Assembly (NCBI GenBank): GCA_002269645.1
Contig: NIVC01000745.1
Coordinates: 1 to 64,000, forward strand
Source: Macrostomum lignano
Taxonomy: Eukaryota
Direction: 5' to 3'
Length of the DNA: 64,000 nucleotides
The notes under the pieces were generated by a model. That model was not told where the DNA came from, did no database searches, and saw only the letters and a list, made by a program, of their open reading frames with translations. The first letter of the stretch is position 1; every line of letters begins with the position of its first letter. The position numbers were made by a program, and so were the translations under genes. This document shows, one piece after another, positions 1,336-45,400 of this stretch.

Positions 1336-3300
1336 TTATAATTACTTACTTCAAATTTCAATTTTCAACAATTGCTTAATGTTCTTTGCTGCCTTTAATT
1401 TTTTTTACAAAGTTAATGCACAAATGTAACCAAATTAGAATATGCTCAAAGAGAAGTAAATCTAAACATTCATAGGCCTATAGCTTATTACGAATATGTC
1501 TAAGAATTATTAATCATATAATATTATAACTTATATCATTGAAAATATCCAACTAGACTAGAAGGGCAAAGATAAGCCCTCTGCTTGTTAATCAAAATAG
1601 GTCCTTATGAAACCCAATAAAAATAAAAATACAAAGTGTAAATAATATAACATTATATGTGTAATGAAATATGCATTTATTTTTGTATTGCTAGTATTTT
1701 TTAAGAATTTATACTAATGTTAAATATTCTAGGAATGTAATATACCAACTATTTACTTACTGTAATTTTTATTATATTATTTGTTTTGAATAGTGTTTTG
1801 TATGCAAATATAAGGTAAAACCAGTTTAAACCAGTTAGGCATGCATTGTACAATTGGTCTCTCAGGTGGCTACAAATAAGCTAACCTTTAGACACTTCAT
1901 CATAGACATAGATGTCACACTACTTGCCGTAGACATAGACTTATACTAGAATATTACATTATTTAAGTTCACTTAGAGTGTAGTTAATATTGCAACTATT
2001 ATTACTATAATTAGCCCAATCCCAATACTAATTTTATCCAATATATAATAGTTATAGTGAGTTAGTAAGCCAGTGTGTGCTACCTAATCTAACTAGATCA
2101 TTAATATTATAATATTTACAGTCAACCTATATTAACCTACACAAATATTAAACCTGATTGCCCTGGCAGCGTCTTTGTTTCAATTTCTTTTATTCAACTC
2201 CAGTATAGAGAATTTGAATAGCAACCACAAGAAGTTAATATATTGCATAAATATTGTTATTTAGCTTTAGCTATTATGCAAATAAGCAGGGCACTATTGG
2301 CATGACATCATGTGGATAATATTATCAGGATTAGCATGGGGATGTAGGAATAAACACTGATATTATTCTTGCATTTGCAAGGAGCCAAGATGTTAGGCTT
2401 AGTATCTTTCATATTTGGTAATATTAATCAGCTTAAACATAATGAATAAATATTTCTACTTGAATTTGAACCTTGCAGTGTGTGAGTATGTAGATTAGAG
2501 TACATTTTCAATTTATTTCCTATCTTTCTTAGCTAGCACTAACCTAACACTTAATTTTTCAGCATACCAAAATATACTATTACCAAAGTGGCTATTACCT
2601 AAGTGGACTTTTACTGGGACATCCAAATCTTTTGATGAACCTGGAAAAATTGCAAACGACTATGCAATATTTAGACATGAATACTGAGCCAGAGCCACCC
2701 CCTCTTCTGCCTCACCCACACTGTCTGCCTCATTATTTTGTGGGCCACACGTTTTGCTAGGACAGTTTTTTAGTTTTTATTGTTTTAGCCGTAGCTTAAA
2801 ATTACACAGAGTTCTGTTGAAAAAATCTGATAGGAACAAAATGGTTGCATTTATTTTGTGTTTAATAATTAGTAAGTAACAAAAAATGAAGCCTAAGGCC
2901 AAAGGAAACATAATTTTAAATTTTGACTTGAATTCTTTCTTCTTGGAAAAATATTATTTTGCAATTTTTTGAATTAGCAGGAATTTCATTAACGATGCAT
3001 AACGAATTACTTTTAAAGGCTCTTTCCTATTGGTACTCTATATTAGTGCAACATTTGTGGTTCGTATTATTCGATTTATTTAAAGTAATGAAAGATGGCA
3101 GTGTAAACAAGTATTAAGGCGCTACCGAAGACTTTGCTAAAATTATCTAGTTGGTTGAATACAATTGAAAAAGTTTTCGACGCGAAAGTAAGTGCTTGTG
3201 AACAAAAGTATGCACTACTACCAAGATGAGCATAGTGTTAGTGGTAATTGTAATACAACAACAACAACAAAATACGCTGTCAAGATGGCAAAAGTCAGCG

Positions 3301-6131
3301 TCACAGGGCGCGCTTCATGGCTTGGGCGCGAACAAAGGCCGCGCCACCGGCAGTGTCCGGGGCGCCGGCGTCAGCCAGCAGACAGTCGACATAACGCCGA
3401 GTTCGCGCTTGACCTCGCCGGTAGGGTGCCTGCAGCGTGAGCAGCAGCACCTCCTGCACCGGCTGTGGGCAGTACGACTCGGCGCGGATGAGATGGCCTG
3501 CGAGCTGGAGTCGCCGACGGCGCAGTAGATCACTTGGACGTGGCAGGCCAGCGCGGCGATAGAGTGCCGCGTTGGTGACTCACTCGACGCCGATGTTGAA
3601 GGCGGCGCGCAGCAGGCCAGCGTGCGCCGCATCGACTTGCTGTTTGAGTGAGTCCGTCAGCGTCCAGGTCTCGGCGTTGTACAGCAGGACGGTCTCGATT
3701 ACCGCCTGGAACAGCGCCGCCCTCTGGCGGTCCGGTAGGGCCTCGAACTGCAGGACTGCCCTCACAGAACGAAAGGCAGCCCAGGCAAGCCCGCGGCGGC
3801 GTCGCAGGTCCTCGCGAGCGTCTGGAACCAGACCGCCGAGGTAGACGAACTGCTGACATCGCGGGAGTTCGGTCGCCTGCCCGTCAGCGCCTCGGCAGAA
3901 TATTGCAGCCTCGGCACGCAGAGCACAACGGTCTTCTGTGTGTTGACCACCAGGCCGACACTCGCCGCAACGGCAGCTAGCCTGTCCAGCTGCCGTTGGG
4001 CGCCCTCGACGGTCGAGGACAGCAGGGCGAGGTCGTCGGCGTAGCCAAGCACGCTGAGCCGCTTCTCCGGTTGACGTCGACCTACGCGTCGCCGCAGCAG
4101 AAAACCGTCGTCGTCGGTAGGAAGAGCAGTCCGCAGCACCCAGTCAAGCACCAGGACGAACAGGAACGGCGCCAGCGTATCTCCCTGAAGTACTCCGGAG
4201 GATGTCTCAAAGGAGTCCGATAGGCCGTCCGGTGTTGTCACAGCAGCTGTCGTATCACGGTACATCGCCATGATGGCGGAGATCAGCTGCTCGGGCACGT
4301 TGTACGCGCGGAGCACCATTGGAAGCACGGCTCTGACAACCGAGTCGAATGCCTTCTTGAAATCAATAAAGATTAGAATCAGGATCGACTGGCGAATCCG
4401 CGCCTCCTCGATGACTCGGCGAAGAGCCAGGATCTGCGCCACTGTGCCGCGATGGGGCCGGAACCCGTTCTGCTCTGGGCGCAGGTACGGATCCAGCACG
4501 GGCTGCAACCGCGAAAGCAGCATCCGGTTGAACAGCTTCGCTGCACAGGACTGAAGGCAGATGTGCCCGTGGTGCCCGGCCTAGTGGTGCCCGGCTTCTT
4601 TGGAACAGCAACGATGTGCGCCGTGGTCCATTCGTTGGGCGCCGCCTCACCGAAGAGCACGCGGTTCATCACTCTGGCGACCTCAGCGGCCACACAGAGG
4701 ATGCGCAGCGCCTCGATGGGCACCTCGTCCGGACCCAGCGCTTTCCCGCCCGGTGACTGCTGGGCGAGCTTGACAACGTCGGCTGCGTTGACTGGGCCTA
4801 CGCTGAAACTCTCCTCTGCCGGCAACGGCGTCTCCGGCGGCAGCGTCAGACTGTCTGGCAGCGGGGGTGGCGGCGCGTTGACGATGGCGGCGAAGAACTC
4901 GCGCAGCTCGTTCCTGCGCTCATCCGGAGTGTCACCAGCCAGGTTCAGCGGATTGCGCCGCTTTCGCCCCGTCAGAGCGTTGATGGCGGACCAGGCCACG
5001 CGCCCTCTGGCATCGGGCCCAGCGGCAGAGACAGCCTGAATGGCGTCATCGACAGCCGCTTGTTGGCGCTGCAGGTAGACAGCCGCCAGAGCTGCCTCTG
5101 CCTCGCGGGTTGGTCACCTGCTCAAGCGGAGCCTCTCCAGATCTTCCCTCGCTGCCTGAATCGCAGGGTCGTCCTGCCAGACCGGCTGCCCACGTTGAGC
5201 CGGTTGCATCATCGGGACTGCTTGCTCCGAGGCGGTTCTGACTGCAGCGCACACTTCCGCATACTCGGCACTTCCACGCTTGTCGCCCAGCGCGGTGTTA
5301 AAGGCGCTAGCAAAGCAACGCTGCGTATCGGTGGCTCTGAGCGCGCGGTAGTAGCGCCGCGGTGGCCGCTTCGGCGGACGGTAGAGCGGATCGCGAAGGT
5401 TGAGGTCGCAGATGAGGAGCCGGTGATCGGACCGCAGAGCCAGCGGCTTGATGGTGCGGCAGTTGACGGCGCGACGACGCTCACGGAAACGCACGAGCAC
5501 GTGGTCGAGCTGTGCTTGTCTCCGGGTTGCGTTCCTGCCACGCGCGTTCCGTCGCCTCCGCTTGCAGCCCACGAAGGTTGCGAGACCGCTCAGTGGCTTG
5601 CGGAAGCGGGTGTTGGCCGACACCATGTCCTGCCTCTCCAGGAAGTCCTCCAGTGCCTCGGTGTTGTTGTTCCCGCGTGGCGTCACGAACAGCGACCTCT
5701 CGGACCTACGCAGGACTGCGTTCAGGTCTCCGAGGACGACCGCTGTGTCACGCTGCGCCATCGCCTCTACCTGCACTGAGAGCTGCTCGAAAAACTCTTG
5801 AGCCTCGTCAGGGCGTGTGGCAGGGCGCGCGTACGCGCAGAACAGGCGAGCATTCCGACTGCGTAGCCGGACGTCGATCCGAAGCAACCGGGGGACAGGG
5901 AGACGCAGCGACAGCTCTGCTGCAGCCTCGGCCCGATCAGCGCTCCAACTCCTCCACTGCCTCGCTGGTCCGCAGAAGTATAGTAGAGGGTCCACCCGGC
6001 GCCCAAGTCCTCACAATGAAGTCCCGGGTCGGCCTTGATAGACACCTCCTGCAGCGAGATGATGTCGCCAGCACCCCTCTACGCCAAGCAGCCTTGAGAG
6101 TGCGGCAGTTCAGCGTCCCGACCCGAAGCAT
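3301..6131 (-). pseudogene. RTE single ORF (EN-RT polyprotein), disrupted
   Basis: ATG at 6131 and terminal TGA at 3303-3301 (...YVDCLLADAGAPDTAGGAAFVRAQAMKRAL*). Track ORFs 5937-6131, 5767-6045, 5114-5995, 4379-4999, 3762-4523 and 3580-3765 are consecutive pieces joined by at least 5 frameshifts. There is also an in-frame TGA at 3582-3580. Confidence 0.88.
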
Positions 6132-6401: not shown

Positions 6402-8681
6402 AACAAAATGAAAATGACGACACGAGTTTTTAAAGTTTTTGAAGCGTTGTTAGTATACGAGCTCGTATGTGCGGCCTTACTTTTTGTATTGAATAAGTTT
6501 GAAATATTTTTTTCGTGTTGAGAAATAAATTAAGGCTCGCTTTCTGGTTAGCGGTAGTGCTAGTGGTTACTGTTGCAGTGCCTTTCCATAGCAGCAGGGC
6601 CTTTAGCACCAAGGGCTTAGCACCAGATGGGCTCCAGCTAAAGCACGATGCAGCATATCTTTCCCCCACCTAGCTCTTTGGATTTGCACTTGTTGCCTTT
6701 GAGTTACGGGCGTTGTTGTACGTGAGGCTGTTTACTAATGGAGTAAATCTAGCAAAAAGCCACTTCTCAGCTTCCCTTCGTGAATTCGAAAACAATTAGT
6801 GATCTGGCTCGCCAAAGTGCATAGAAAATTAATGCATGCAGCTACTCTCTCTGCATTTGCGTGAATGGCAGCTAACCGCTATTACAGTGTATAGTCATGC
6901 AGTCCGGTTTCAATGTTAATCATCCTGCATATTTGCTACATGTGGACAGCAGGCAGAATACACAATATACGGAAACTCGCGGACAAGCCATCATCGCCCT
7001 GGCTGGAAATTTGGTGATTTTGCGCAGATGCTTCGCATCATTTCCATATATAGTTGTGGGCTTGGATTTCAACACAGCCAGCGCTGGCCCGAGCGAGCTG
7101 CAGCTGTCCCACACCGCTCAAATTCTAACCGCCAACAAAATGTGCGATGCGGGATTGCTTTTTTAGGCCTCGCAGTATTTGAGCTCTCGGTCGGAAAATA
7201 TGGTGGCACATCTGGCGGCCGGCACATCTGCTTCTGTATTAGATGAAATTTGACTGCTTTAAGCTGCGCTTGAGCAAACAGAAATTCACAACAGTAGAAG
7301 TCAACGCTAAGTGCAGTGTCTGGCTTCAGGAAGCCGAAACTGTTATTGATTTCGTCCTGCGAAATCGGACCTGCTCAATAGAAAAGCAGTGATGGCGGGA
7401 TTGGCTGAAGAAGAACCTATATTGTCTGGTGGCTTTTTAATAAATAATAATACTTAACGCTTTACTTAACCACAGAGCGCCTTGGCTACTACCGCAAGTC
7501 AACTAGGCGACAGTCAACCTGCAGCCAGCCAGACGACAATTTTGCTGTTATACGTCAGTTCCACTGACTCCGGAGCACGCGTGTCCACGACCGTCTCATC
7601 ATTAGGTACTGAGGTACACTGTGCGAGTACCTCCTGCACACACAGGGCCCTGGGGGTAGGCCCTTATTGGCATCCATGCAGAGAGAGGTCACTGGTGCGA
7701 GAGACGGACGGACGAGTTACCGCTGAGCAGTCCTGCCGGGCAGTTGGGTTACTCTGACCGATAAGGAACAACCAACTGAAAGGCTGATCAGTTTTAAGCA
7801 TCGGAAACACCCAAGTACTAAGTTAGTGCAAGCAATGCGAAAGTGCTTCCCATGCCAGTGTGGGGTTGGCCTTCATCAATAATGCACGCCCTGCGGCAGG
7901 ACAAACCGCCAAGTCGGGCCGCCCCCCAGCCGCTGAAGGCCCAGCGATCTGTGCACAGCTTTGTGTTGAACAGCTGGAATTCATTGCGCAAAATGGGGAT
8001 CCCGGGCGGAGGATCAGCCTTAGGGCAGCGGGTCCCAGATGTTGTTTGCCATTTATCTATTGCCAGTTTGGCATCCCAAGAGGACTGACGGAGGCCAGAG
8101 GCTTTAGGAACTCGGTGGGGGGGACGCCCGATTATTGGCAGGCTGATCGGGGGTCGGTGGTCTGAGTATCGACTCAGCATCGACGCCTTCGCTCATGAAT
8201 TATTCATTGCCGGGCCTTCTGGAGGCAGCAGCAAAACTTGAAATCCACTGGAGAGAAACTCCGTCTCCCCCGGGGCCGCTTGTCGCCACGCGGCTCCCGC
8301 AGTTGAGCCGTCGGGTTTTTTTCGACCATTCGGCCAAAAGAAGAGGAATTTCTTCCCCTCCGGACCGGCCAGTCTGCGGCATCCGCTCTCTGGAAATGGT
8401 GAGACGGGTAGAAAGCGGAGGAGAGGACTCAGGCGGGAGAGAATGGGTTTACCCAGCTGCCAGGAGCCAACTGGATTCAAGCGGATGGCAGAAGGGGAGA
8501 GAAAAAAAATGGGAAGAATTGAGTGAGCCGGCCGGAGCTTGAGTAGATTTTTTGGGGGTCTCATTTTCCCCCTCCTTGGCTGGCTCTCGTCTCCCCTCTC
8601 CCACCAAGCTGCGGCAGGCTGAGGGGCTCAGTTTAAAAAGCCCAATGCTGCATCTTGGGGAGGGCTGAGCTGCCGCCTGAG

Positions 8682-9761
8682 ATGAGCCACGACGAGGAGC
8701 TGTTGGTCCCCGCCGCCCCCGGCTTCGAGGTCTGGCGCCTGGTTCTGGTGGGCCGCCTGATCCTCAACTCCGCAGCCATCGTGCTCAACCTGCTGAACTG
8801 CCTGCTGCTCAGGAAGCTTTGCCGGAAGCGCCGCGCCCACACCAGCCTGCTGAGTCTGCTTTACCTGAGCTACGCTGAGCTGGGCTTCACTGTGACCTCC
8901 CAGCTCTTCTCGGTGCTGTTTCTGGCTTCGCACACCGGTGGCCGAGACGACCACAGCCGAAGCAGCCCACCTGAGCACCAGAAGTTCTTCGTGCTGGTCG
9001 CCCTGGCGAGCTTCGGCAGCCTGAAGCACAGCTCGCTGTTCGTGCGCCAGTGGTGGCTCGTCTGCCTCGTCTGCCTGCACGGCGTCGCCAAGCGCTTCCG
9101 AGCGCTGGCCCACCGCCTGGCCGCTCGGCGCTTCGTGCGCGGCCTGTACAGCCTCTGCCTGCTGGTCGGGGCCAGCTTCGGCCTCGTCCGTCTGGTGGCC
9201 GAGAAGATCCCGGATTACTTCCGCAAAGACTACATCAGCGAGGAGCAGCACGAGCTCATCCACCGAGTGCTGTACGTTCTGGAGTTCGGCGTGCCGCCGC
9301 TCCTGGCCGTGCCGTGCGTGGCTGCGCTGGCCGCCCTGGTGGCCTGCGCCTGGCGACGGAGCCCCGCCTGCGAGACGGGCGATCAGCAGGCGGAGGGGGA
9401 CGCCGACTTATCGGTTTCCGCCGCCCTGCAGCAGCAGCAGCAGCAGCAGCAGCAGAGGTTGACTTGGTCGTGGCGCAGCTCACAGGTGGTGCTCATCATC
9501 GGGCTGCTGTTCGTGGTGCTGCAGGGCCCGCTGATCCTGCTGGACCGGGTGGGCGCGGAGTCGCCGCTGTTTATCAACCTGCAGGACCTGGTGATCTCGC
9601 TGTTCAGCTGCAGCTACTTTGTGATCTTCTGCGCCACCAGCGCCGCATTCCGAAACAAGCTGGCGGTGATGTGCACCTGCACTGTGACCGCGGGCACAGC
9701 TGAGAGAGACACCACCGTGCTGGACAGCGCCTGTGAGATGGTGCCCAGCAACAGAATCTGA
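8682..9761 (+). CDS. Intronless divergent class A (rhodopsin-like) orphan 7TM receptor, ~359 aa
   Basis: Open GC-rich frame with seven hydrophobic segments: TM1 ...IVLNLLNCLLL, TM2 LYLSYAE, TM3 FVRQWWLVCLV, TM5 EFGVPPLL, TM6 LLFVVLQGP, TM7/H8 SYFVIFCATSAAFRNKL. First in-frame ATG is 8682 (the track start at 8655 is TTG). AATAAA near 10140. Confidence 0.8.
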   Translation: MSHDEELLVPAAPGFEVWRLVLVGRLILNSAAIVLNLLNCLLLRKLCRKRRAHTSLLSLLYLSYAELGFTVTSQLFSVLFLASHTGGRDDHSRSSPPEHQKFFVLVALASFGSLKHSSLFVRQWWLVCLVCLHGVAKRFRALAHRLAARRFVRGLYSLCLLVGASFGLVRLVAEKIPDYFRKDYISEEQHELIHRVLYVLEFGVPPLLAVPCVAALAALVACAWRRSPACETGDQQAEGDADLSVSAALQQQQQQQQQRLTWSWRSSQVVLIIGLLFVVLQGPLILLDRVGAESPLFINLQDLVISLFSCSYFVIFCATSAAFRNKLAVMCTCTVTAGTAERDTTVLDSACEMVPSNRI

Positions 9762-11952: not shown

Positions 11953-15858
<3,906 letters not shown>

Positions 15859-16172
15859 TGTGTGCCTGTGCATACGACTGCGTATATATCCGAGTGTGCC
15901 TGCTCAGGGAAGTCGGGCGGAATGGACAGTAATGCTTATCGATTGCAACCCATGATGTTTTTGTATTTTTTTCACGATTTTTGCAATTGTAATGAACGCA
16001 TAAGTTAAAGCTTTGCTCCACTTTTGAGATCTAAAAGGTGTTATAAACTCCAATCCAAAGACTCAAATCACTGTGTTTTCAACTCATATTGATGAACAAG
16101 TTCAGTTGTCAATAAAAGTGTCTGTCTCGAGCATCTGCAAAAGACTCGCGCAGTTGCCATTGACGTCAGTCA

Positions 16173-16438
16173 TTACTCGCACATCTTCCAATAGCTAGGT
16201 ATCCCGGAGCAGCGCTTTGAGCAGCAGTACGAGGCTAAGCTATTCTTACAGCGCCTGCCTTTCTTGAGGCATTCCAGTCTGCACGCGGTTGAGCAGTCTG
16301 CAGGGCGTTTTGCATGCGATTGGTTATTAGCCGCAGGCAAGCCAAGGATATGCTAAATAAACCTAATTCGGGGCTAAACTCACCGAGAACCGCGAGCAGG
16401 GCAAGCAGAACCAGCAGCACGAGTAGTTGGGTCTTCAT
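16173..16438 (-). CDS. Small secreted cysteine-rich peptide, inhibitor-cystine-knot (knottin/conotoxin VI-VII framework) type, 59 aa, two exons
   Basis: Exon 1 16438-16384 (MKTQLLVLLVLLALLAVL, signal peptide) ends at donor G|GTGAGT. The 86-nt intron has a CTAAT branch-like motif and a CCCTGCAG acceptor. Exon 2 16297-16173 is joined in phase 1. Product: MKTQLLVLLVLLALLAVLDCSTACRLECLKKGRRCKNSLASYCCSKRCSGIPSYWKMCE*. Confidence 0.78.
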
Positions 16439-16977
16439 TTAGACTTTTATAGCTTCCAAAAGTTTACTTGGGGTCAACGCCTGTCTGCAGCAGCCTCTCT
16501 TAGGAGCTGAATCTTTTGATGTCTATGGCAAAAACCCACAGGGTTGCGCTGTACCGTGACCTTTGCCCGGCGAGCTGACAGCCACGCCCGTTAGTGCCAT
16601 AGACGCATTAGGTGCCATCTACTGGTCAGCTGTGCGCCCTCCTTGACTTGGTCGGAGGGCACTGAATGATTTCTCCTTGCCCTCGAGGTCGAGAAGACTT
16701 TCCCATCTTCATGGTCTAATTACTACAGTTCAAAACTGCTGTCAGTAAACAAGCTCAAAAAGTTTTTAAGCTTCATCAGGCCAGCAAGATAATGAGCTGC
16801 TCAAGACTCCTACTAATTGCGTCTATAATTTTCTGTCTGCCTCCACCAACTTCCACTCATCTTTTTTCCTTAGACTCAGCCTGCCCCCTGCCGGTTGTTT
16901 GAGTTGGAGGGTGCTCAGCAACTGGGATGGCCAAGGAGGCTTTGAACTGGGATCTGGAGTGTCAAATCCTCTCGTAT

Positions 16978-17388
16978 TGTGAATTAGACATTGTTAATTA
17001 GACATTGTGAATTAGACATTGTTAATTAGACATTGTGAATTAGACATTGTGAATTAGACATTGTGAATTAGACATTGTGAATTAGACATTGTGAATTAGA
17101 CATTGTGAATTAGACATTGTGAATTAGACATTGTGAATTAGACATTGTGAATTAGACATTGTGAATTAGATATTGTGAATTAAATATTGTGCATTAGACA
17201 TTGTGAATTAGACATTGTGAATTAGACATTGTGAATTAGACATTGTGAATTAGACATTGTGAATTAGACATTGTGAATTAGACATTGTGAATTAGACATT
17301 GTGAATTAGACATTGTGAATTAGACATTGTGAATTAGACATTAGACATTGTGAATTAGATATTGTGAATTAAATATTGTGCATTAGAC
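16978..17388. repeat. Minisatellite, 14-bp unit ATTAGACATTGTGA
   Basis: About 29 tandem copies. Confidence 0.95.
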
Positions 17389-17720: not shown

Positions 17721-18560
17721 AGGGTGAGATTGGATGCTTGTGGGGTGAGATTGGATGCTCACTGGGTGAGATTGGATGTTTGTGTGTTGATATTGGATGA
17801 GATTGGGTGAGATATTTGATGCTTGTTGGGTAGAAGCTTTTAAGGCGAGATAGGATGCTTGTATAATGAGATTCGATGCTTTTAGGTGCGATTGGATTTT
17901 TTAGGGCGAGATTAGATGCTTGAGAGAAGATTAAATGCTTGAGGGTGAGATTAGATCTTGAAGGGTGAGATCAGATGCTTGAAGGGCGAGATTAGATGTT
18001 TGTAGGGTGGCATTGGATGCTTTTAGAGTGGCATTGGATGCTTTTAGGGCGAGATTAGATATTTGTAGGGTGGCATTGGATGCTTTTAGGGTGCGATTGT
18101 ATGTTTTAGGGTGAGATTAGATGCTTGAGAGAAGATTAAATGCTTGAGGGTGAGATTAGATCTTGAAGGGTGAGATCAGATGCTTGAAGGGCGAGATTAG
18201 ATGTTTGTAGGGTGGCATTGGATGCTTTTAGAGTGGCATTGGATGCTTTTAGGGCGAGATTAGATATTTGTAGGGTGGCATTGGATGCTTTTAGGGTGCG
18301 ATTGTATGTTTTAGGGTGAGATTAGATGCTTGAGGGCGAGATTAGATGCTTGAAGGGTGAGATTAGATGTTTGTAGGGTGGCATTGGATGCTTTTAGGGC
18401 GAGATTAGATGCTTGAAGGGCGAGATTAGATGTTTGTAGGGTGGGATTGGTTGCTTTTAAGGTGAGATCAGATGCCATTAGAATATGATTGGATGCAAAA
18501 AGTTCGATATTAGATTAAATTGACATTGGATGATTTTAAGATGAGATCAGATGACTTTCA
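17721..18560 (+). repeat. Degenerate 21-bp minisatellite, family A (GAGATT(G/A)GATGCTTGAAGGGT), forward
   Basis: Tandem degenerate units with internal higher-order duplications; reverse complement of the array at 20742-21590. Confidence 0.85.
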
Positions 18561-19110
18561 ATTAAGAATAAATGCTTTTCTGTAGACCGCAAGTTCTCAG
18601 CTGACATGAAATGATTGTGTTATTTTTTTAAAAAACTTCTAGGCAGTTCCCAGTCACGCCCCACTGGTTCAGCATTAAAGCAGCTGCCTCAGATGAGGCT
18701 CGAGACAATGGCAAACTGGCGGAGCGAAGTCAGCGCCTCGCGTGCGGGCATCGGTGCAGGTGAAGGCGAGGGTCGATGAGAGACCTGAGCTGCCTTGAAA
18801 GGGAGGGCAAAACCAATATTGGGAAGGCGGCGGCGATCGAGCGGATTCCGGACAGTCTCTGAAATTCAAAATTGCAGATCCGTGGCGGGAGGCTGGGGAG
18901 CCGCTCCGGAACTTGGCGAAGATCGATTCGAAGGAAAAGCAAATTTCAGTCTCCGGTTCGGCCTCACCTGGGAGTTCCCGATCGAATCCAGGAAGAAGGG
19001 AGTTGAGCACGGAACTCACGGCTACCCCATCCCAGGTGGGACTGGCGGCGCTGCAGTCTAATCCTAAATCTTTATCGGATGAGGCAAATCCGTGCAGTTT
19101 AATCTACTTC

Positions 19111-20316
19111 TGCATGCAGGCTAGATTAGCAATCCATTCTATTCCTGCATCATCCATGCAGGCTAGATTAGCAATCCATTCTATTCCTGCATCATCCATG
19201 CAGGCTAGATTAGCAATCCATTCTGTTCCTGCATCATCCATGCAGGCTAGATTAGCAATCCATTCTGTTCCTGCATCATCCATGCAGGCTAGTTTAGCAA
19301 TCCATTCTGTTCCTGCATCATCCATGTAGGCTAGATTAGCAATCCATTCTATTCCTGCATCATCCATGCAGGCTAGATTAGCAATCCATTCTGTTCCTGC
19401 ATCATCCATGCAGGCTAGATTAGCAATCCATTATATTCCTGCATCATCCATGCAGGCTAGATTAGCAATCCATTCTGTTCCTGCATCATCCATGCAGGCT
19501 AGATTAGCAATCCATTCTGTTCCTGCATCATCCATGCAGGCTAGATTAGCAATCCATTCTATTCCTGCATCATCCATGCAGGCTAGATTAGCAATCCATT
19601 CTGTTCCTGCATCATCCATGCAGGCTAGATTAGCAATCCATTCTATTCCTGCATCATCCATGCAGGCTGGATTAGCAATCCATTCTGTTCCTGCATCATC
19701 CATGCAGGCTAGATTAGCAATCCATTCTATTCCTGCATCATCCATGCAGGCTAGATTAGCAATCCATTCTGTTCCTGCATCATCCATGCAGGCTAGATTA
19801 GCAATCCATTCTGTTCCTGCATCATCCATGCAGGCTAGATTAGCAATCCATTCTATTCCTGCATCATCCATGCAGGCTAGATTAGCAATCCATTCTATTC
19901 CTGCATCATCCATGCCGGCTAGATTAGCAATCCATTCTGTTCCTGCATCATCCATGCAGGCTGGATTAGCAATCCATTCTGTTCCTGCATCATCCATGCA
20001 GGCTAGATTAGCAATCCATTCTGTTCCTGCATCATCCATGCAGGCTGGATTAGCAATCCATTCTGTTCCTGCATCATCCATGCCGGCTAGATTAGCAATC
20101 CATTCTGTTCCTGCATCATCCATGCAGGCTGGATTAGCAATCCATTCTGTTCCTGCATCATCCATGCCGGCTAGATTAGCAATCCATTCTGTTCCTGCAT
20201 CATCCATGCAGGCTAGATTAGCAATCCATTCTATTCCTGCATCATCCATGCAGGCTAGATTAGCAATCCATTCTGTTCCTGCATCATCCATGAAGGCTAG
20301 ATTAGCAATCCATTCT
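19111..20316 (+). repeat. 42-bp minisatellite, family B (ATGCAGGCTAGATTAGCAATCCATTCT(G/A)TTCCTGCATCATCC), forward
   Basis: About 28 near-identical copies; source of the spurious MQARLAIHSVPASS ORFs. Confidence 0.97.
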
Positions 20317-20741
20317 GCACCTCAGACTTCGCTGGTTCCGAGGGCTGAGCAGAAATGTGGCTGCCTGCTTGTCACTCCAGCCTGCCAGCTCATCAGTTCG
20401 CGACCCCCGGACTAATCAGGGGGGGGGGGGGTAGGGGCAGCCGCTCATTTTTCGCCAAATTCCTGCGGTCTGAGGAAGTCACGAAAACCCTCAGCCCCGA
20501 ATTTCAGAGAATTCAATCTCCAATGCCTAATTAGCAGCGAGAATTTCTGATTTTCAATCTCGAGTGAATTCTAAAGGTCTCTGAGGTGAAGAAAACAATT
20601 TGAATACTTTTATGACTGCTCTGGCTACCTCGGCAGACAGGTGACTGCTTGCTATAGCGTGCTTGGACTGAGTTTTAATAAAATTTGGCTGACGAAAGCT
20701 AAGATCATCCCAAAAGTATGCAATCACTACTTCCGATCATA

Positions 20742-21590
20742 CAATCTCATCCTTCAAGCATCCAATCTCACTATTCAGGCCTCCAATCTTACCCTTCAAG
20801 CATCCAATCTCACTATTCAGGCCTCCAATCTTACCCTTCAAGCATCCAATCTCACTATTCAGGCCTCCAATCTTACCCTTCAAGCATCCAATCTCACTAT
20901 TCAGGCCTCCAATCTTACCCTTCAAGCATCCAATCTCACCCTAAAAGCATCCAATCTCACCCCTCAAGCATCTAATCTTACCTTCAAGCATCCAATCTCA
21001 CCCTTCAAGCATCCAATCTTATCCCTTTAAGCACCCAATCCCACCTATCAAACATCCAATCCCACCCTAGAAGCATATCATCCAATCTCATCTTTCAAGC
21101 ATCCAATCTCACCTTCAAGCATCCAATCTCACCCCTCAAGCAGCCAATCTCACCCTTCAAGCATCCAATCTCACCCTTAAGCATCCAATCTCACCCTTCA
21201 AGCATCCAATCTTACCTTCAAGCATCCAATCTCACCCTTCAAGCATCCAATCTTATCCCTTTAAGCACCCAATCCCACCTATCAAACATCCAATCCCACC
21301 CTAGAAGCATATCATCCAATCTCATCTTTCAAGCATCCAATCTCACCTTCAAGCATCCAATCTCACCCCTCAAGCAGCCAATCTCACCCTTCAAGCATCC
21401 AATCTCACCCTTAAGCATCCAATCTCACCCTTCAAGCATCCAATCTTACCCTTTAAGCATCCAATCTCACCCTCAAGCAGCCAATCTCACCTTCAAGCAT
21501 CCAATCTCACCCCTCAAGCAGCCAATCTCACCTTCAAGCATCCAATCTCACCCTTCAGGCATCCAATCGCACCTATCAAGCGCATCTCAT
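20742..21590 (-). repeat. 21-bp minisatellite, family A, reverse orientation (CATCCAATCTCACCCTTCAAG)
   Basis: Tandem units; reverse complement matches the 17.7-18.6 kb array. Confidence 0.88.
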
Positions 21591-22467
21591 CAAAGCATAC
21601 AGCCAGTGGACAGTTTATTTTGCCTGAATATTTAACCACACAAAACTGACACACAGTCCCAGCGCATGCAGCCGCCCCCAATGCACCCAAGCCGCCATCA
21701 GAAAATCGATGCAGACTTTGCGGCGGTAGCTCTGACAGGATCTGATGCAGCGGCTGCTCCAGGGCGGCACCGGGATTTGCGGGTGGGGTGGGCGGTTTTG
21801 GCGGCCCGCAGCAGGATGCGGCCCGTCAGGTGAGAGTCAATCAAGACCCCGCGATCGATGATTAATTGCAGCTAATTTGCGTCCCGGAGGCCATGCCGAG
21901 AGGTTGGAGGACATTTGAGCTGGTTTGCTGGCAATAAAATCGCCATCCTTATCGATGCTGCAGCTGTTCTTGACAAACTCAATAAAAATGGGATGAATTT
22001 TCGCTAAAGCACTACTCACATGAAAGTAGTAGAGTTTATTGCATTTTACAGCATATTTCTGCAAGGATTGTGAATCATGACCGTGACTGACAGAGCGCTC
22101 ATCCTCGCACTAAGAAGAAAAGCGAGATCGTGCTCAAGACTGCGCCGATGCGGATTGTCGCTTCTTTACCGGGGCGACCCCACGCGTAGGGCAGTGCCCC
22201 CCATGCCCCCCTGCTCTCTGGCTTTGATCAGCAGCTGAAACCTGCAGCAGCAAAGACGACAAGCAGCCGCCCTGCTGCCTGTGCAAGCGATTTTTTAAGC
22301 CAGCGGACTCACCGGCTTTGTATGGGAAGCGACTGGCGAAAGGGGAGTTTTAAGGAGAATTATTAATCACGGATCGCTGAATTCAGTGCTTGCGCTTCAA
22401 TAACAGAACTTTAATCCCACGATTTGAGGGGCGCTTTTCTGGGGAGATTAGGAATAGTATACCGAAC

Positions 22468-25010
22468 ATTGGATTGCTAATCCAGCCTGCATGGATGATG
22501 CAGGAACAGAATGGATTGCTAATCTAGCCTGCATGGATGATGCGGGAACAGAATGGATTGCTAATCTAGCCTGCATGGATGATGCAGGAACAGAATGGAT
22601 TGCTAATCTAGCCTGCATGGATGATGCAGGAACAGAATGGATTGCTAATCTAGCCTGCATGGATGATGCAGGAATAGAATGGATTGCTAATCTAGCCTGC
22701 ATGGATGATGCAGGAACAGAATGGATTGCTAATCTAGCCTGCATGGATGATGCAGGAATAGAATGGATTGCTAATCTAGCCTGCATGCAGGAACAGAATG
22801 GATTGCTAATCTAGCCTGCATGGATGATGCAGGAATAGAATGGATTGCTAATCTAGCCTGCATGGATGATGCAGGAACAGAATGGATTGCTAATCTAGCC
22901 TGCATGGATGATGCAGGAATAGAATGGATTGCTAATCTAGCCTGCATGCAGGAACAGAATGGATTGCTAATCTAGCCTGCATGGATGATGCAGGAATAGA
23001 ATGGATTGCTAATCTAGCCTGCATGGATGATGCAGGAACAGAATGGATTGCTAATCTAGCCTGCATGGATGATGCAGGAATAGAATGGATTGCTAATCTA
23101 GCCTGCATGCAGGAACAGAATGGATTGCTAATCCAGCCTGCATGGATGATGCAGGAACAGAATGGATTGCTAATCCAGCCTGCATGGATGATGCAGGAAC
23201 AGAATGGATTGCTAATCCAGCCTGCATGGATGATGCAGGAACAGAATGGATTGCTAATCCAGCCTGCATGGATGATGCAGGAACAGAATGGATTGCTAAT
23301 CCAGCCTGCATGGATGATGCAGGAATAGAATGGATTGCTAATCTAGCCTGCATGGATGATGCAGGAACAGAATGGATTGCTAATCTAGCCTGCATGGATG
23401 ATGCAGGAATAGAATGGATTGCTAATCTAGCCTGCATGCAGGAACAGAATGGATTGCTAATCTAGCCTGCATGGATGATGCAGGAACAGAATGGATTGCT
23501 AATCCAGCCTGCATGGATGATGCAGGAATAGAATGGATTGCTAATCTAGCCTGCATGGATGATGCAGGAACAGAATGGATTGCTAATCTAGCCTGCATGC
23601 AGGAACAGAATGGATTGCTAATCTAGCCTGCATGGATGATGCAGGAATAGAATGGATTGCTAATCTAGCCTGCATGGATGATGCAGCAACAGAATGGATT
23701 GCTAATCTAGCCTGCATGGATGATGCAGCAACAGAATGGATTGCTAATCTAGCCTGCATGCAGGAACAGAATGGATTGCTAATCTAGCCTGCATGCAGGA
23801 ACAAAATGGATTGCTAATCTAGCCTGCATGGATGATGCAGGAATAGAATGGATTGCTAATCTAGCCTGCATGGATGATGCAGGAATAGAATGGATTGCTA
23901 ATCTAGCCTGCATGCAGGAATAGAATGGATTGCTAATCTAGCCTGCATGGATGATGCAGAAACAGAATGGATTGCTAATCTAGCCTGCATGGATGATGCA
24001 GCAACAGAATGGATTGCTAATCTAGCCTGCATGGATGATGCAGGAACAGAATGGATTGCTAATCCAGCCTGCATGGATGATGCAGGAACAGAATGGATTG
24101 CTAATCCAGCCTGCATGGATGATGCAGGAACAGAATGGATTGCTAATCTAGCCTGCATGGATGATGCAGGAACAGAATGGATTGCTAATCCAACCTGCAT
24201 GGATGATGCAGGAATAGAATGGATTGCTAATCTAGCCTGCATGCAGGAACAGAATGGATTGCTAATCTAGCCTGCATAGATGATGCAGCAACAGAATGGA
24301 TTGCTAATCTAGCCTGCATGGATGATGCAGGAACAGAATGGATTGCTAATCTAGCCTGCATGGATGATGCAGCAACAGAATGGATTGCTAATCTAGCCTG
24401 CATGGATGATGCAGGAACAGAATGGATTGCTAATCTAGCCTGCATGCAGGAACAGAATGGATTGCTAATCTAGCCTGCATGGATGATGCAGGAACAGAAT
24501 GGATTGCTAATCTAGCGTGCATGCAGGAACAGAATGGATTGCTAATCTAGCCTGCATGGATGATGCAGGAACAGAATGGATTGCTAATCTAGCCTGCATG
24601 GATGATGCAGGAATAGAATGGATTGCTAATCTAGCCTGCATGCAGGAATAGAATGGATTGCTAATCTAGCCTGCATGTAGGAACAGAATGGATTGCTAAT
24701 CTAGCCTGCATGCAGGAACAGAATGGATTGCTAATCTAGCCTGCATGCAGGAACAGAATGGATTGCTAATCTAGCCTGCATGCAGGAACAGAATGGATTG
24801 CTAATCCAGCCTGCATGGATGATGCAGGAACAGAATGGATTGCTAATCTAGCCTGCATGGATGATGCAGGAATAGAATGGATTGCTAATCTAGCCTGCAT
24901 GGATGATGCAGGAATAGAATGGATTGCTAATCTAGCCTGCATGGATGATGGAGGAACAGAATGGATTGCTAATCTAGCCTGCATGCAGGAATAAAATGGA
25001 TTGCTAATCT
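22468..25010 (-). repeat. 42-bp minisatellite, family B, reverse orientation, with 35-bp deletion variants
   Basis: Unit ATGGATGATGCAGGAACAGAATGGATTGCTAATCTAGCCTGC is the reverse complement of the 19.1-20.3 kb unit. Interspersed units lack 7 nt. Confidence 0.97.
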
Positions 25011-27238: not shown

Positions 27239-27843
<605 letters not shown>

Positions 27844-39406: not shown

Positions 39407-42400
39407 TCACTTGGAGAAGAGGCCCAGCAGGCCGCCCTTCTTGGCAGGCGGAGGCGCCATGATCATGGGCACCTGGTTCATGTGGGTGATGCTGATGGTG
39501 CAGGGCGCCTGAGACCAGGGCTCGCCGTCGATCTGCATGGGGAAGCGCCTCCTGGTCCGGATGACCACCTCACTGCACTGCGCCAGCCGCTTGCCGGAGC
39601 TGCGCAGCCCCCCGGCCACCATGCCGGCGTGGACGGCGTTCTCCAGGCCGACAACTTCAATGAGCTGGTCGCCCATGTCCTGCACTGCGAACGCCAGCTC
39701 GTTGTTGCTAAGGGAAGCACTGGACAGCTCGCGGTCTCTGCTCCCGCTGGCTCCGCCGCTCGGCTTCCGCTTGCCGCCCTGCTGCCCCGACGCCGCTGCA
39801 GCCGCGGCAGCTGCCGCCGCGGCCGCCGAGCTTCGCTTTCGGTTGTTCTCCCACAGAGTGCGGCCGCCGTACACGGAGTTGATGTTGAGCAGCGCCATGC
39901 CCTCCAGCGGCGTGCCCGAGCCCAGGTCCAGGGCGTAGCCGTCACAGATGATGTCCAGGCTCTCGTGCAGGTTCTTGCAGGACCCGCCCAGCATCTGCGG
40001 GGATGTGGGTGGGAATTTTTGTGAATCACGGGGATCTTGGATTTATGTGAGTCATCGGGATTTGGGATCTACGAGTATGTGAATGACTTATAGGGATCTG
40101 GGATTCACGCAAAGCATGGGGATCTGGGATTCACACCAACCATGGGGATCTGGGATTCACGCAATCCATGGGGATCTGGGATTCACGCAATCCATGGGGA
40201 TCTGGGGTTCGCACCAACCATGGGGATCTGGGATTCACGGGATTCACACCAACCATGGGGATCTGGGATTCACGGGATTCACACCAACCATGGGGATCTG
40301 GGATTCACGGGATTCACACCAACCATGGGGATCTGGGATTCACGGGATTCACACCAACCATGGGGATCTGGGATTCACAGGATTCACACCAACCATGGGG
40401 ATCTGGGATTCACGGGATTCACACCAACCATGGGGATCTGGGATTCACGTGATTCACACCAACCATGGGGATCTGGGATTCACGGGATTCACACCAACCA
40501 TGGGGATCTGGGATTCACGGGATTCACACCAACCATGGGGATCTGGGATTCACGGGATTCACACCAACCATGGGGATTTGGGATTCACGGGATTCACACC
40601 AACCATGGGGATCTGGGATTCACGGGATTCACACCAACCATGGGGATCTGGGATTCACGGGATTCACACCAACCATGGGGATCTGGGATTCACGGGATTC
40701 ACACCAACCATGGGGATCTGGGATTCACGGGATTCACACCAACCATGGGGATCTGGGATTCACGCAATCCATGGGGATCTGGGATTCACGCAATCCATGG
40801 GGATCTGGGGTTCGCACCAACCATGGGGATCTGGGATTCACGGGATTCACACCAACCATGGGGATCTGGGATTCACGGGATTCACACCAACCATGGGGAT
40901 CTGGGATTCACGGGATTTACACCAACCATGGGGATCTGGGATTCACGGGATTCAAGACACCATGGGGATCTGGGATTCGCGGGATTCACACCAACCATGG
41001 GGATCTGGGATTCACGGGATTCACACCAACCATGGGGATCTAAGATTCACGGGATTCAAAACAACCATTAGGATCTGGGCTTCGCACCGAACTGGCGGCA
41101 AAGCCGGGGCCAACAAGGCTAAATTTCGATCCCTAAGCAACCGGCAGTCCCAGTTTCAGGACGGGATTTCGTGCCGAGGGGGCCGAGGGATTAAAAACTT
41201 TCTAAATTGGCTGGTTTCGCCAGCGAGCCCCCCCCAGCCCGGCAGTCCTTGTCAGCTCATAACTTTTAGATTAAATAAAGCATTGCAGCCCGAATTCCGG
41301 ACAGGATCGGGCAAGAACTTTGCGGGGATAAATATCCCCTAAATATCCCCTACCTTCCTGACTGGCTTTCCTCTGTCTCTGGGGTTTCCAGCACCGGTCG
41401 GGGACTCTTCAATAAACCTGGATTGGATTCCTGAACTTGGGTTGCCTCACAAACTAGAATACTCACAAACTAGAATATTCACAAACTAGAATATTCACAA
41501 ACTAGAATACTCACAAACTAGAATATTCACAAACTAGAATATTCACAAACCAGAATATTCACAAACCAGAACATTCACAAACCAGAATATTTACAAACTA
41601 GAATATTCACAAACTAGAATATTTACAAACTAGAATACTCACAAACTAGAACATTCACAAACCAGAACATTCACAAACTGGAATATTCACAAACTAGAAT
41701 ATTCACAAACTAGAATATTCACAAACTAGAATATTCACAAACTAGAATATTCACAAACTAGAATACTCACAAACTAGAATACTCACAAACTAGAATATTC
41801 ACAAACTGGAATATTCACAAACTGGAATATTCACAAACTAGAATATTCACAAACTAGAATATTCACAAACTGGAATATTCACAAACCAGAATATTCACAA
41901 ACTAGAATACTCACAAACTAGAATATTCACAAACTAGAATATTCACAAACTAGAATATTCACAAACCAAAATATTCACAAACTAGAATTTTCACAACTCG
42001 TAATATTAAAAAACTACAAAATTCACAAGCAAAAATATTCACTTCACAAGCAAAAATATTCACAAACTTCTTTAATCCAGAACCCGTGTCCCCGTCTGGA
42101 CCGGCAAAAAAACGCACGAGCCGAAAATGTCAGCCAAAAGTTCGCAGAAGCAGCAGCAGAAGAAGAAATCGAATAACTCTAACTGCGACAGGGCAAGAAG
42201 CCGGAGACACCGGACCCCACCTGGGCTGCTGCAGAGGATAAAAATAGATCACACAGCAGCAGGACAGCCTGTGGTAGATGCGGTGCTGCTATTTCTGAAG
42301 CCCCAGCCTCTGCCCACTCCGATAATTGGGGTCGGAATTAGGCCTCAGTAATAAAAGCTGATTGAAGCGCACAGGCAGATCACAGCGGGGGGTCTCCCAG

Positions 42401-45400
42401 ACCTGGAAAGATTCATTCTTCCATTGGTGCGCAGGCAGCACTTGCTCTCTTCATAGCCGCAGCCCCCACCCGCAATTCCTATTCATAGCCCTTAATTCCT
42501 AAAGCCAGGCTAATCCGACTAGAAATCCCCGAGTCCCAGAGTCCCAGTCCCCGAGTCCTAGAGTACAGTCCCCGAGTCCTAGAGTACAGTCCCCGAGTCC
42601 TAGAGTACAGTCCCCGAGTCCTAGAGTACAGTCCCCGAGTCCTAGAGTACAGTCCCCGAGTCCTAGAGTACAGTCCCCGAGTCCTAGAGTACAGTCCCCG
42701 AATCCAAGTCCCCGAATACCAGAGTCCCAGTCCCCGAATCCCAGAGTCCCAGTCCCCGAATACCAGAGTCCCAGTACCCGAGTCCCAGAGTCCCAGTCCC
42801 CGAGTCCCAGAGTCCCAGTCCCCGAATCCCAGAGTCCCAGTCCCCGAGTCCCAGAGTCCCAGTCCCCGAATACCAGAGTCCCAGTCCCCGAATCCCAGAG
42901 TACCAGTCCCCGAATCCCAGAGTACTAGTCCCCGAATCCGAGAGTACCAGTCCCCGAATCCCAGAGTCCCAGTTTCCGAATCCCAGAGTCCCAGTCTCCG
43001 AGTCCCGGAGTCCCCAGTCCCCGAATCCCAGAGTCCCAGTCCCCGAATACCAGATTCCCAGTCCCCGAATCCCAGAGTCCCAGTCCACGAGTCCTAGAGT
43101 ACCAGTCCCCGAGTCCTAGAGTACCAGTCCCCGAATCCCAGAGTCCCAGTCCACGAGTCCTAGAGTACCAGTCCCCGAGTTCTAGAGTACCAGTCCCCGA
43201 ATCCCAGAGTCCCAGTCCCCGAGTCCTAGAGTACCAGTCCCCGAATCCCAGAGTCCCAGTCCACGAGTCCTAGAGTACCAGTCCCCGAGTCCTAGAGTAC
43301 CAGTCCCCGAATCCCAGAGTCCCAGTCCACGAGTCCTAGAGTACCAGTCCCCGAGTCCTAGAGTACCAGTCCCCGAATCCCAGAGTCCCAGTCCCCGAGT
43401 CCTAGAGTACCAGTCCCTGAATCCGAGTCCCAGTTTCCGAATCCCAGAGTCCCAGTTTCCGAATCCCAGAGTCCCAGTTTCCGAATCCCAGAGTCCCTAG
43501 TCCCCGAGACCCGGAGTCCCTGAGTCCCAGTCCCCGAATCCCAGCAAGCCTCCGCACCTCGGTCGCGCCCATCTCCACATAGTAGGCCTTGTTTCGAAAT
43601 CGCGACTTGAATTTTTCCGGGTGCTTCTCCCTCAACAGGTGCCACCGGTGCGCGATGGCCGCGTCCACCCCGATGCTGAAGTAGTTGTTGATGATTGTGG
43701 CGGGGATCTCGTCCCGGGCTGGCTCGACAGCCGCCGCCCCCGCCGGGTCCTCCGCGGCCGCCCCGGCGCCGCTGCCAGCGTCGCCAGCCTCGGCCGCGTC
43801 GCCGTTGTTCTCCGGCGCGGGCTCGGAGAAGTTGATCTTCCAGCGGTCCAGCAGCATCACGCTGCCCTGGCTGATGCGGTGCAGAATTTTCTCCAGGCTC
43901 TCGTTCTCGTAGCCGCCGCCCCAGCGCAGGCACCGGGCCAGGTCATTCCCGGTGCCCAGGGGCAGCACGGCCACCGGCGGCCGGTTGTCGCCCCAGTCGA
44001 ACTTGTCCATGGCCTCCAGCAGCCAGCCCGCCGTGCCGTCGCCGCCGCACACCAGGATGCGGAACTGCGGCAGCTCCCTGAAAAAGTTCAGCCCGATGTA
44101 CGGCCCGCCGTCCTTCACCAGGTCGTACACCTGGCGCGGGTTCAGCAGGTACTGCATCTTGTGCAGAATGCGGACTCCCTGCTTGCCGCCAGACTTCGGG
44201 TTGATGAACACCAGCAGCGGCACGCAGCCGGAGGGCGGCACAATCTGGAAGCTGGAGGACTGCTGATGAGGCGAGCAGGCCAGCTGGTCCAGCTGCGACC
44301 CGGCGGACTGGCTGTTGGGGAGGCTCTCGTTGGCTGCCGCCGCCGGCCTGCCGCGGTCCAGTACGGCGGGGAAGATCGCCGTGGGGGGCAGCACGTGCTC
44401 GCGGAGGGCGCCGAGGTCGCACTCGCTGGTCCACTGCTCCGCGCACTTGTTGTGCAGGCTGACCTTGCACCAGCGGCACTGCATGCCTGCAGTGGGTTGG
44501 GTGCAGATCTAGCTGAGGTGGGTGCAGATCTAGCTGAGGTGGATGAAGATCTAGCTGTGGTGGGTGCAGATCTAGCTGAGGTGGATGAAGATCTAGCTGT
44601 GGTGGGTGCAGATCTAGCTGAGGTAGGTGCAGATCTAGCTGAGGTGGGTGCAGATCTAGCTGAGGTGCATGAAGATCTAGCTGTGGTGGGTGCAGATCTA
44701 GCTGAGGTAGGTGCAGATCTAGCTGAGGTGGGTGCAGATCTAGCTGAGGTGGGTGCAGATCTAGCTGAGGTGCATGAAGATCTAGCTGAGGTGGGTGCAG
44801 ATCTAGCTGAGGTGGATGCAGATCTAGCTGAGGTGGGTGCAGATCTAGCTGAGGTGCATGAAGATCTAGCTGAGGTGGGTGCAGATCTAGCTGAGGTGGA
44901 TGCAGATCTAGCTTAGGTGGGTAGAGTGGGGTGCAAAGATCTAGCTGGGGTGGGTAGATTGGGGTGCAAAGATCTAGCTGGGGTGGGTAGAGTGGGGTGC
45001 AAAGATCTAGCTGGGGTGGGTAGATTGGGGTGCAAAGATCTAGCTGGGGTGGGTAGAGTGGGGTGCAAAGATCTAGCTGGGGTGGGTAGAGTGGGGTGCA
45101 AAGATCTAGCTGGGGTGGGTAGAGTGGGGTGCAAAGATCTAGCTGGGGTGGGTAGAGTGGGGTGCAAAGATCTAGCTGGGGTGGGTAGAGTGGGGTGCAA
45201 AGATCTAGCTGGGGTGGGTAGAGTGGGGTGCAAAGATCTAGCTGGGGTGGGTAGAGTGGGGTGCAAAGATCTAGCTGGGGTGGGTAGAGTGGGGTGCAAA
45301 GATCTAGCTGGGGTGGGTAGAGTGGGGTGCAAAGATCTAGCTGTGGGTAGAGCAGTTGAGCAGACCGGGTTGCTAATCCATCTCTCACCTGTGATGCCGG

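Follow-up and report, generated by a model that had tools for sequence, protein, structure and literature searches.

The cysteine (Cys) framework C-C-CC-C-C is shared by the O-superfamily conotoxins (framework VI/VII), in which a conserved signal peptide is followed by a hypervariable mature peptide; in omega-conotoxin MVIIA the spacing is C-x6-C-x6-CC-x3-C-x4-C. A frozen signal peptide and Cys scaffold combined with a changing surface is typical of conotoxin, defensin and effector-peptide families, and also of fast-evolving reproductive proteins. The alpha-nemertides of ribbon-worm epidermal mucus are lineage-restricted inhibitor cystine knot (ICK) peptides with a rapidly diversifying mature region. 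Similarly, the CRP-I peptides of Mytilus are small, secreted and lineage-restricted C-C-CC-C-C peptides of a soft-bodied marine lophotrochozoan, again with a rapidly diversifying mature region. These knottin-like peptides are encoded by four exons and have a dibasic-cleaved propeptide (PMC10138031). Our literature searches found neither a knottin family described from Platyhelminthes nor a description of secreted effector peptides of Macrostomum lignano, a transgenic, regenerating flatworm model. Here we analyse 64,000 nucleotides of M. lignano DNA (assembly GCA_002269645.1, contig NIVC01000745.1, positions 1 to 64,000; hereafter the window), which at 16103-16702 probably contain an intact gene for a secreted, disulfide-stabilised cationic peptide. 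The gene is a diverged paralogue of the M. lignano genes Mlig004682, and the role of its product is most likely defensive, either antimicrobial or deterrent.

The minus strand of 15600-17000 was read and the exons were assembled by script. A sequence-only reading of the same DNA had proposed a hidden two-exon gene at 16173-16438, with a Leu-rich signal exon, a G-GTGAGT donor, an 86-nt intron, a phase-matched second exon and the junction 16384/16297, and this model was recovered base for base (Table 1). The spliced product, MKTQLLVLLVLLALLAVLDCSTACRLECLKKGRRCKNSLASYCCSKRCSGIPSYWKMCE, is a 59-aa precursor containing eight Cys, the last six of which are spaced C-x6-C-x7-CC-x3-C-x9-C, as had been read. 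Also the cationic nature of the product was confirmed: the exon-2 peptide has 9 Lys or Arg residues against 2 Glu and 1 Asp, giving a net charge of +6 and an isoelectric point of 9.1. The unspliced frame yields a 67-aa, Cys-poor open reading frame (ORF).

Among 5.8 billion proteins the sole relative of this precursor was the M. lignano cluster BOX15_Mlig004682g1/g2/g3 (E 3e-12, 100% query coverage), with 64% identity in BLASTP and 75-76% identity over the columns aligned with MAFFT. A profile search of the same 5.8 billion proteins (E 2e-39) returned only this cluster, and so did HMMER when 1.84 billion representatives were scanned exhaustively with a profile of the mature region (E 1.5e-27), in agreement with the lineage-specific family that had been suggested. 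Judged by these matches, the gene is a new paralogue in an uncharacterised, Macrostomum-restricted peptide family. The Mlig004682 proteins are 69 aa long and are found in GenBank as 'hypothetical protein' (PAA46843.1, PAA85542.1 and PAA64343.1) and in UniProt (A0A267DC28 and A0A267GJV9). To call the gene hidden was an overstatement, as the family itself is already in the databases and apparently only this copy is unannotated.

In each of the three Mlig004682 loci (L001-L003), taken from GCA_002269645.1, a 55-nt exon 1 ending in ...GTTCTCG is followed by GTGA(A/G)GT, a 104-nt intron ending in ACATACAG and a second exon. When the three loci are spliced at these homologous positions, the resulting proteins are identical to those in GenBank, and reading through the intron leads to a stop after 30 codons. 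The position and phase of the intron (phase 1, after signal codon 18) are common to this gene and the Mlig004682 copies. The annotation of the assembly was built from RNA-seq and a de novo transcriptome (StringTie/TACO/TBONE and TransDecoder), not ab initio (PMC5730564), and because it reproduces the same splice, the equivalent of the 16384/16297 junction is transcript-supported in the paralogues.

All eight Cys (C20, C24, C28, C35, C43, C44, C48 and C58) are invariant between this gene and Mlig004682. In addition, 17 of the 18 signal-peptide residues are the same, the SYCCSKRCSG core and the YWK-CE C-terminus are found in both, both peptides are strongly cationic (net about +6 to +7), and promoter-proximal DNA blocks are conserved. 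The Cys2-Cys3 loop is one residue shorter here and the last inter-Cys loop has 9 residues, compared to 19 in Mlig004682. The present precursor and its intron are also shorter than those of Mlig004682, and this copy differs in having a 5' leader shorter by 28 nt and an alternative acceptor of its own, and in being absent from the protein databases. The gene is a paralogue of Mlig004682, and an older, diverged one. The possibility that it is an orthologue from another species was rejected, because an exon of the diacylglycerol kinase (DGK) gene in the window is 100% identical to the M. lignano protein A0A1I8FL28 over blocks of up to 82 residues, which assigns the window to M. lignano or to a genome practically identical with it. 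The three annotated Mlig004682 copies would most simply correspond to three subgenomes, which have been described for the neopolyploid M. lignano (PMC10733133).

Similarity to the paralogues at the DNA level is confined to 16103-16702 (BLASTN), where identity is 72-73% in the 5' flank, 93-95% in exon 1, 66-73% in the intron, 84% in exon 2 and about 50% in the 3' flank. The exons are mismatched at 23 of 180 positions (12.8%), compared to 101 of 346 (29%) in the intron and upstream region (Fisher p = 2e-5), and the two indels in exon 2, of 3 nt and 27 nt, are both in frame. Nonsynonymous (dN) and synonymous (dS) divergence, estimated according to Nei and Gojobori, amounted to 0.03 and 0.13 in the signal region (dN/dS 0.22), 0.19 and 0.22 in the mature region (0.87), and 0.25 and 0.25 in the mature non-Cys codons (about 1.0). 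None of the eight Cys is changed, although 13 of the 41 aligned residues differ (hypergeometric p = 0.03). When neutral decay of the paralogue coding sequence was simulated, the probability that the ATG, an open frame and all Cys were kept was 0.013 at exon-level and 1e-4 at flank-level divergence. These figures indicate that the ORF, the splice sites, the frame and all eight Cys are maintained by selection and that the other mature residues drift or diversify. In this pattern the signal peptide and the Cys scaffold are frozen, and the surface is free to change.

The signal peptide was assessed by rules, namely hydropathy and the (-3,-1) rule. K2 is positive, 9-residue hydropathy windows over L5-L18 score 3.4-3.7, and the c-region DCSTA has S at -3 and A at -1. 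The sequence fits the classical n-h-c description of a signal peptide, which bears out the assignment made earlier to the first exon. The best cleavage site is STA before C, after A23; weaker alternatives are LLA before V (after A16) and LDC before S (after C20), and in the paralogues cleavage at VLG before C (after G19) is also possible. Earlier cleavage would leave eight Cys and four disulfides, and this form of the mature peptide is mildly favoured because C20 is conserved in both paralogues.

The following route from gene to product can be proposed. Exon 1 and the first residues of exon 2 would form a cleavable signal peptide, with cleavage favoured after STA23. The product, of 36-43 residues and a net charge of +6/+7, would fold in the endoplasmic reticulum into a compact peptide with three or four disulfides and a six-Cys core of an ICK/knottin-compatible framework. 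It would then be secreted as an extracellular effector, most likely a defensive one, acting on membranes or ion channels as an antimicrobial or as a deterrent or toxin in mucus or gland secretion. With this locus an orphan family gains a second paralogue, one that has diverged strongly. The peptide is short enough to be synthesised, and the family offers an inexpensive, readily tested candidate for a part in the innate defence, chemical deterrence or reproductive signalling of flatworms.

Several observations weigh against this proposal. Cleavage after A23 leaves seven Cys, an odd number, which would imply a free thiol or a dimer. Queried with the precursor, its mature region, the six-Cys core and the paralogue, Pfam returned no family at E up to 10, not even from its conotoxin, spider-toxin and antifungal-knottin models, apart from a spurious match of the signal peptide to IBIN. 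AlphaFold2 gave a helical model of low confidence for the 40-aa peptide (predicted local distance difference test, pLDDT, 63.3), and for the 32-aa core a beta hairpin (E15-17/E20-22), likewise of low confidence (pLDDT 63.6) and in disagreement with the former; Foldseek searches of the PDB with these models found no usable match. At the level of the gene, the start context is weak, with T at -3 where the paralogues have G, the non-conserved TATA-like motif TATAAAAG is separated from the ATG by only 13 nt, and neither AATAAA nor ATTAAA is present within 400 nt downstream, where only AATACA was found at +206. The whole-gene dN/dS is 0.8, a figure that alone does not exclude relaxed constraint. 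The exact spliced 59-aa and unspliced 67-aa products are absent from approximately 15 billion catalogued proteins, and the GenBank and UniProt sets that include the paralogues lack this copy. The name Mlig004682 had 0 matches in a full-text literature search, which gave no tissue or expression data, and 0 matches in the supplements of PMC5816591, PMC7336406 (17 files), PMC5946080, PMC12732829, PMC12896417 and PMC12148028.

Because TATAAAAG is so near to the ATG and is not conserved in the paralogues, it was rejected as a promoter, and the true promoter probably lies within the conserved blocks of 16467-16672. Another possibility is trans-splicing of the mRNA at the polypyrimidine tract and AG at 16453-16465; 39% of M. 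lignano genes are trans-spliced (PMC5730564). A known RNA gene in the conserved upstream region was also considered and rejected, as Rfam gave no match there.

A knottin-like fold of the core is plausible, and we see the case as about evenly balanced. Its loop lengths are within the usual ICK range, and the two best sequence matches of the core in the PDB, both below threshold, are PAFP-S (1dkc, E 0.096-0.17) and Ep-AMP1 (2mfs, E 0.62). Cys I, II, III-IV and V are in register with those of the two peptides, which resemble ours in having Gly in loop 1, similar size and cationic character. They are, however, plant peptides with six Cys instead of eight and an unrelated gene and precursor organisation, and with E-values that are not significant the likeness is a resemblance rather than a demonstrated homology. 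In the paralogues, the last loop of 19 residues is longer than the usual ICK range. The peptide is not a plain six-Cys ICK, because of its two extra conserved N-terminal Cys. Nor is the cysteine-stabilised alpha/beta motif of defensins found: CxxxC occurs twice (CSTAC and CRLEC), CxC does not occur, and the C-terminal half reads CC-x3-C-x9-C.

The searches lend no support to placing the peptide in any named toxin family. Neither Pfam nor the scan covering 1.84 billion representatives gave a match to O-superfamily conotoxins, and that scan and the profile search of 5.8 billion proteins detected no similarity to alpha-nemertides or CRP-I. Regarding the cystine knot or conotoxin framework claimed in the sequence-only reading, the spacing fits, but no conotoxin or knottin profile matches and the conserved Cys are eight rather than six. 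The loop lengths are very similar to those of MVIIA, and a basic loop 1 with Gly is another feature in common with the O superfamily. On the other hand, the signal sequence is unlike that of these conotoxins, the gene is compact, with two exons separated by a short intron, and there is no room for a propeptide, the first Cys being two residues after the hydrophobic core. M. lignano is a diatom-grazing flatworm and not a venomous predator. From Mytilus CRP-I the gene differs in having two coding exons and no propeptide. It is possible, if on balance doubtful, that we are dealing with a genuine flatworm knottin family of independent origin, in which an omega-conotoxin-like basic core with a fourth disulfide serves as an ion-channel-blocking or antimicrobial secretion. 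If the fold is a knottin, the family could be the first of its kind from Platyhelminthes and a flatworm example of the scaffold, its independent origin being a separate question.

The strongest competing explanation accepts the gene as real and considers its product a reproductive (prostate or seminal-fluid) or signalling peptide, the rapid evolution of which reflects sexual selection in a hermaphrodite. Many putative seminal-fluid proteins of Macrostomum are small secreted orphans, and the restriction of the family to this genus is in line with such a role. A dN/dS of about 1 in the mature non-Cys codons beside a conserved signal fits reproductive proteins as well as toxins or antimicrobial peptides, and two papers report, for Macrostomum, a rapid evolution of genes related to reproduction and putative seminal-fluid proteins (PMC7336406, PMC5977470). 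The supplements that were searched, the 17 files of PMC7336406 among them, hold no positional or tissue data for Mlig004682, both paralogues have remained strongly cationic (net about +6), and the weak resemblance to knottin antimicrobial peptides leans towards defence. For these reasons we consider a reproductive or signalling role rather improbable.

It is also conceivable that the copy is silent or decaying, with an intact ORF that is no longer expressed or selected, and that only the Mlig004682 copies are functional. The absence of its product from GenBank, UniProt and the catalogue of 15 billion proteins, a 5' leader 28 nt shorter than in the paralogues, the T at -3, the lack of a canonical poly(A) signal, the location between large satellites and the whole-gene dN/dS of 0.8 all speak for such a copy. 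The retention of ATG, splice sites, frame and eight Cys is nevertheless improbable under neutrality in the simulations described above, the exons are significantly better conserved than intron and flank, and the promoter-proximal blocks are conserved. Moreover, models that overlapped repeats or fell below 0.5 reads per kilobase per million (RPKM) were removed in the GenBank pipeline (PMC5730564), so that the absence of this copy from GenBank says little about its expression. A silent copy is thus unlikely. The locus also shows the way in which transcript-filtered annotation misses small peptide genes of two exons that lie in satellite-rich DNA.

The sequence-only reading had itself pointed out a downstream GTGCAG acceptor, the use of which would lead to a Cys-free peptide, and this site does exist. 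Splicing to 16278 would yield a 32-aa product with the tail ...DWNASRKAGAVRIA*, and if this were the main product the Cys-rich frame would be incidental. The site is well formed, with GTGCAG before A just 19 nt downstream of the first acceptor. Its AG is, however, absent from all three paralogues, which read GTGCGT and have no acceptor there; the upstream AG is the first after a conserved intronic block and stands at the position used in the transcript-derived models; and it is the Cys-rich frame that is conserved, not the Cys-free one. The downstream acceptor looks like a copy-specific by-product of the AGA codon of Arg25, and it is very unlikely to define the main product.

Outside the satellites of the window, 25 stop-free segments contain 6 or more Cys in 45 aa and 6 contain 8 or more, and Cys-richness alone is not beyond chance in this window. 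That a hydrophobic ORF, splice-like motifs and a Cys-rich ORF merely came together by accident in this repeat-rich DNA, for which the frequency of such segments speaks, is scarcely credible, because the highly significant homology to transcript-derived genes of identical architecture places the combination far beyond chance.

Table 1. Features of the peptide gene, its flanking satellites and the exons of the diacylglycerol kinase (DGK) gene.
Feature	Position	Strand	Remarks
Conserved 5' flank, putative promoter or 5' leader	16439..16702	minus	BLASTN similarity to the three Mlig004682 loci ends at 16702
5'-flank conserved blocks	16656-16672, 16509-16533, 16467-16484	minus	From alignment to paralogues
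Possible polypyrimidine tract/AG acceptor	16453-16465	minus	
TATA-like TATAAAAG	16444-16451	minus	Not conserved in paralogues
Start codon ATG	16438-16436	minus	In-frame TAA immediately upstream
Exon 1, coding part	16384..16438	minus	55 nt, phase 1; MKTQLLVLLVLLALLAVL and first base of codon 19
Exon 1, content	16384..16438	minus	Met, Lys and 16-residue Leu/Val/Ala core, predicted signal-peptide n- and h-regions
Donor site	After 16384	minus	CTCG at GTGAGT
Intron	16298..16383	minus	86 nt, phase 1; GTGAGT...CCCTGCAG
Intron conserved block ATCCTTGGCTTGC	16337-16349	minus	
Intron conserved block AATCGCATGCAAAA	16308-16321	minus	Possible branch-site region
Exon 2, coding part	16173..16297	minus	125 nt; predicted signal-peptide c-region and mature 8-Cys cationic peptide
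Alternative 3' splice site, GTGCAG before A	16278..16280	minus	19 nt downstream of main acceptor; exon start 16278
Stop codon TAA	16175-16173	minus	
Conserved start of 3' untranslated region	16103..16172	minus	Paralogue similarity ends here
(AGTT)n microsatellite	11953-15859		About 977 copies, 3.9 kb; starts 314 nt 3' of stop codon; context only
14-bp satellite ATTGTGAATTAGAC	16976-17388		30 copies; 538 nt 5' of ATG; context only
DGK EF-hand exon	47196-47726	minus	
DGK C1 domain exon	44913-45797	minus	
DGK catalytic exon	43402-44484	minus	
DGK accessory domain exon	39407-39994	minus	

The position of the gene between two satellites, noted earlier, was confirmed by the (AGTT)n and 14-mer arrays on its two sides. 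An 88-nt stretch (15854-15941), situated where the (AGTT)n array ends on the side of the gene and 232 nt 3' of its stop codon, is 82% identical to sequence located 3.2 kb upstream of Mlig004682 in L002 and L003, and it may be the end of a repeat element tied to the microsatellite. A fragment of a long interspersed nuclear element (LINE) on the minus strand at 3280-5995, with an apurinic/apyrimidinic endonuclease at 5114-5995 and a reverse transcriptase at 3762-4523, has approximately 77% protein identity to a LINE about 270 nt downstream of Mlig004682 in L001-L003, where the orientation relative to the peptide gene differs. Beyond this shared LINE family, in its other relative orientation, no synteny with the Mlig004682 loci was found, and tblastn over the window and 20-kb flanks of the M. 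lignano loci found no nearby paralogue.

A type-I DGK gene with very long exons occupies 39407-47726 (minus strand). Minisatellites crowd its introns, and some arrays abut or enter the ORFs at 42526-43542, 44498-45348 and 46893-47295. The catalytic exon scored only 65% identity to the M. lignano UniProt entries, but in pairwise alignment residues 37-118, 163-185 and 226-288 are essentially identical, and the gaps between these blocks are places where the old gene model is shifted out of frame. The M. lignano models A0A1I8FL28 and A0A1I8FJN0 look frameshifted relative to the window sequence.

Two further regions have coding potential. On the plus strand, an open frame of 368 codons at 8655-9761 (ATG at 8682) contains a poly-Gln run and several hydrophobic, transmembrane-like stretches; the 359-aa ORF has no Pfam match and no identical protein on record, and a membrane protein or receptor may be encoded here in a single exon. 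At 53695-57240, in AT-richer DNA of the minus strand, four consecutive ORFs of 149-183 aa without a Pfam match (53695-54246, 54266-54715, 56403-56873 and 56779-57240) could be exons of an uncharacterised gene or a degraded mobile element.

Tandem repeats make up approximately 40% of the 64 kb. More than 20 distinct families are distributed across 10311-59040, among them (AGAC)n at 27239-27843 and many 20-42-bp minisatellites. Long spurious ORFs and extreme local skews in GC and AT result from these repeats. In the region 17721-24985 two satellite families are each present twice in opposite orientation: the 21-mer AGGGTGAGATTAGATGCTTGT at 17721-18475 and inverted at 20738-21581, and a 42-mer at 19113-20317 and inverted at 22470-24985. 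The resulting order A+ B+ A- B- is not that of a simple inverted duplication.

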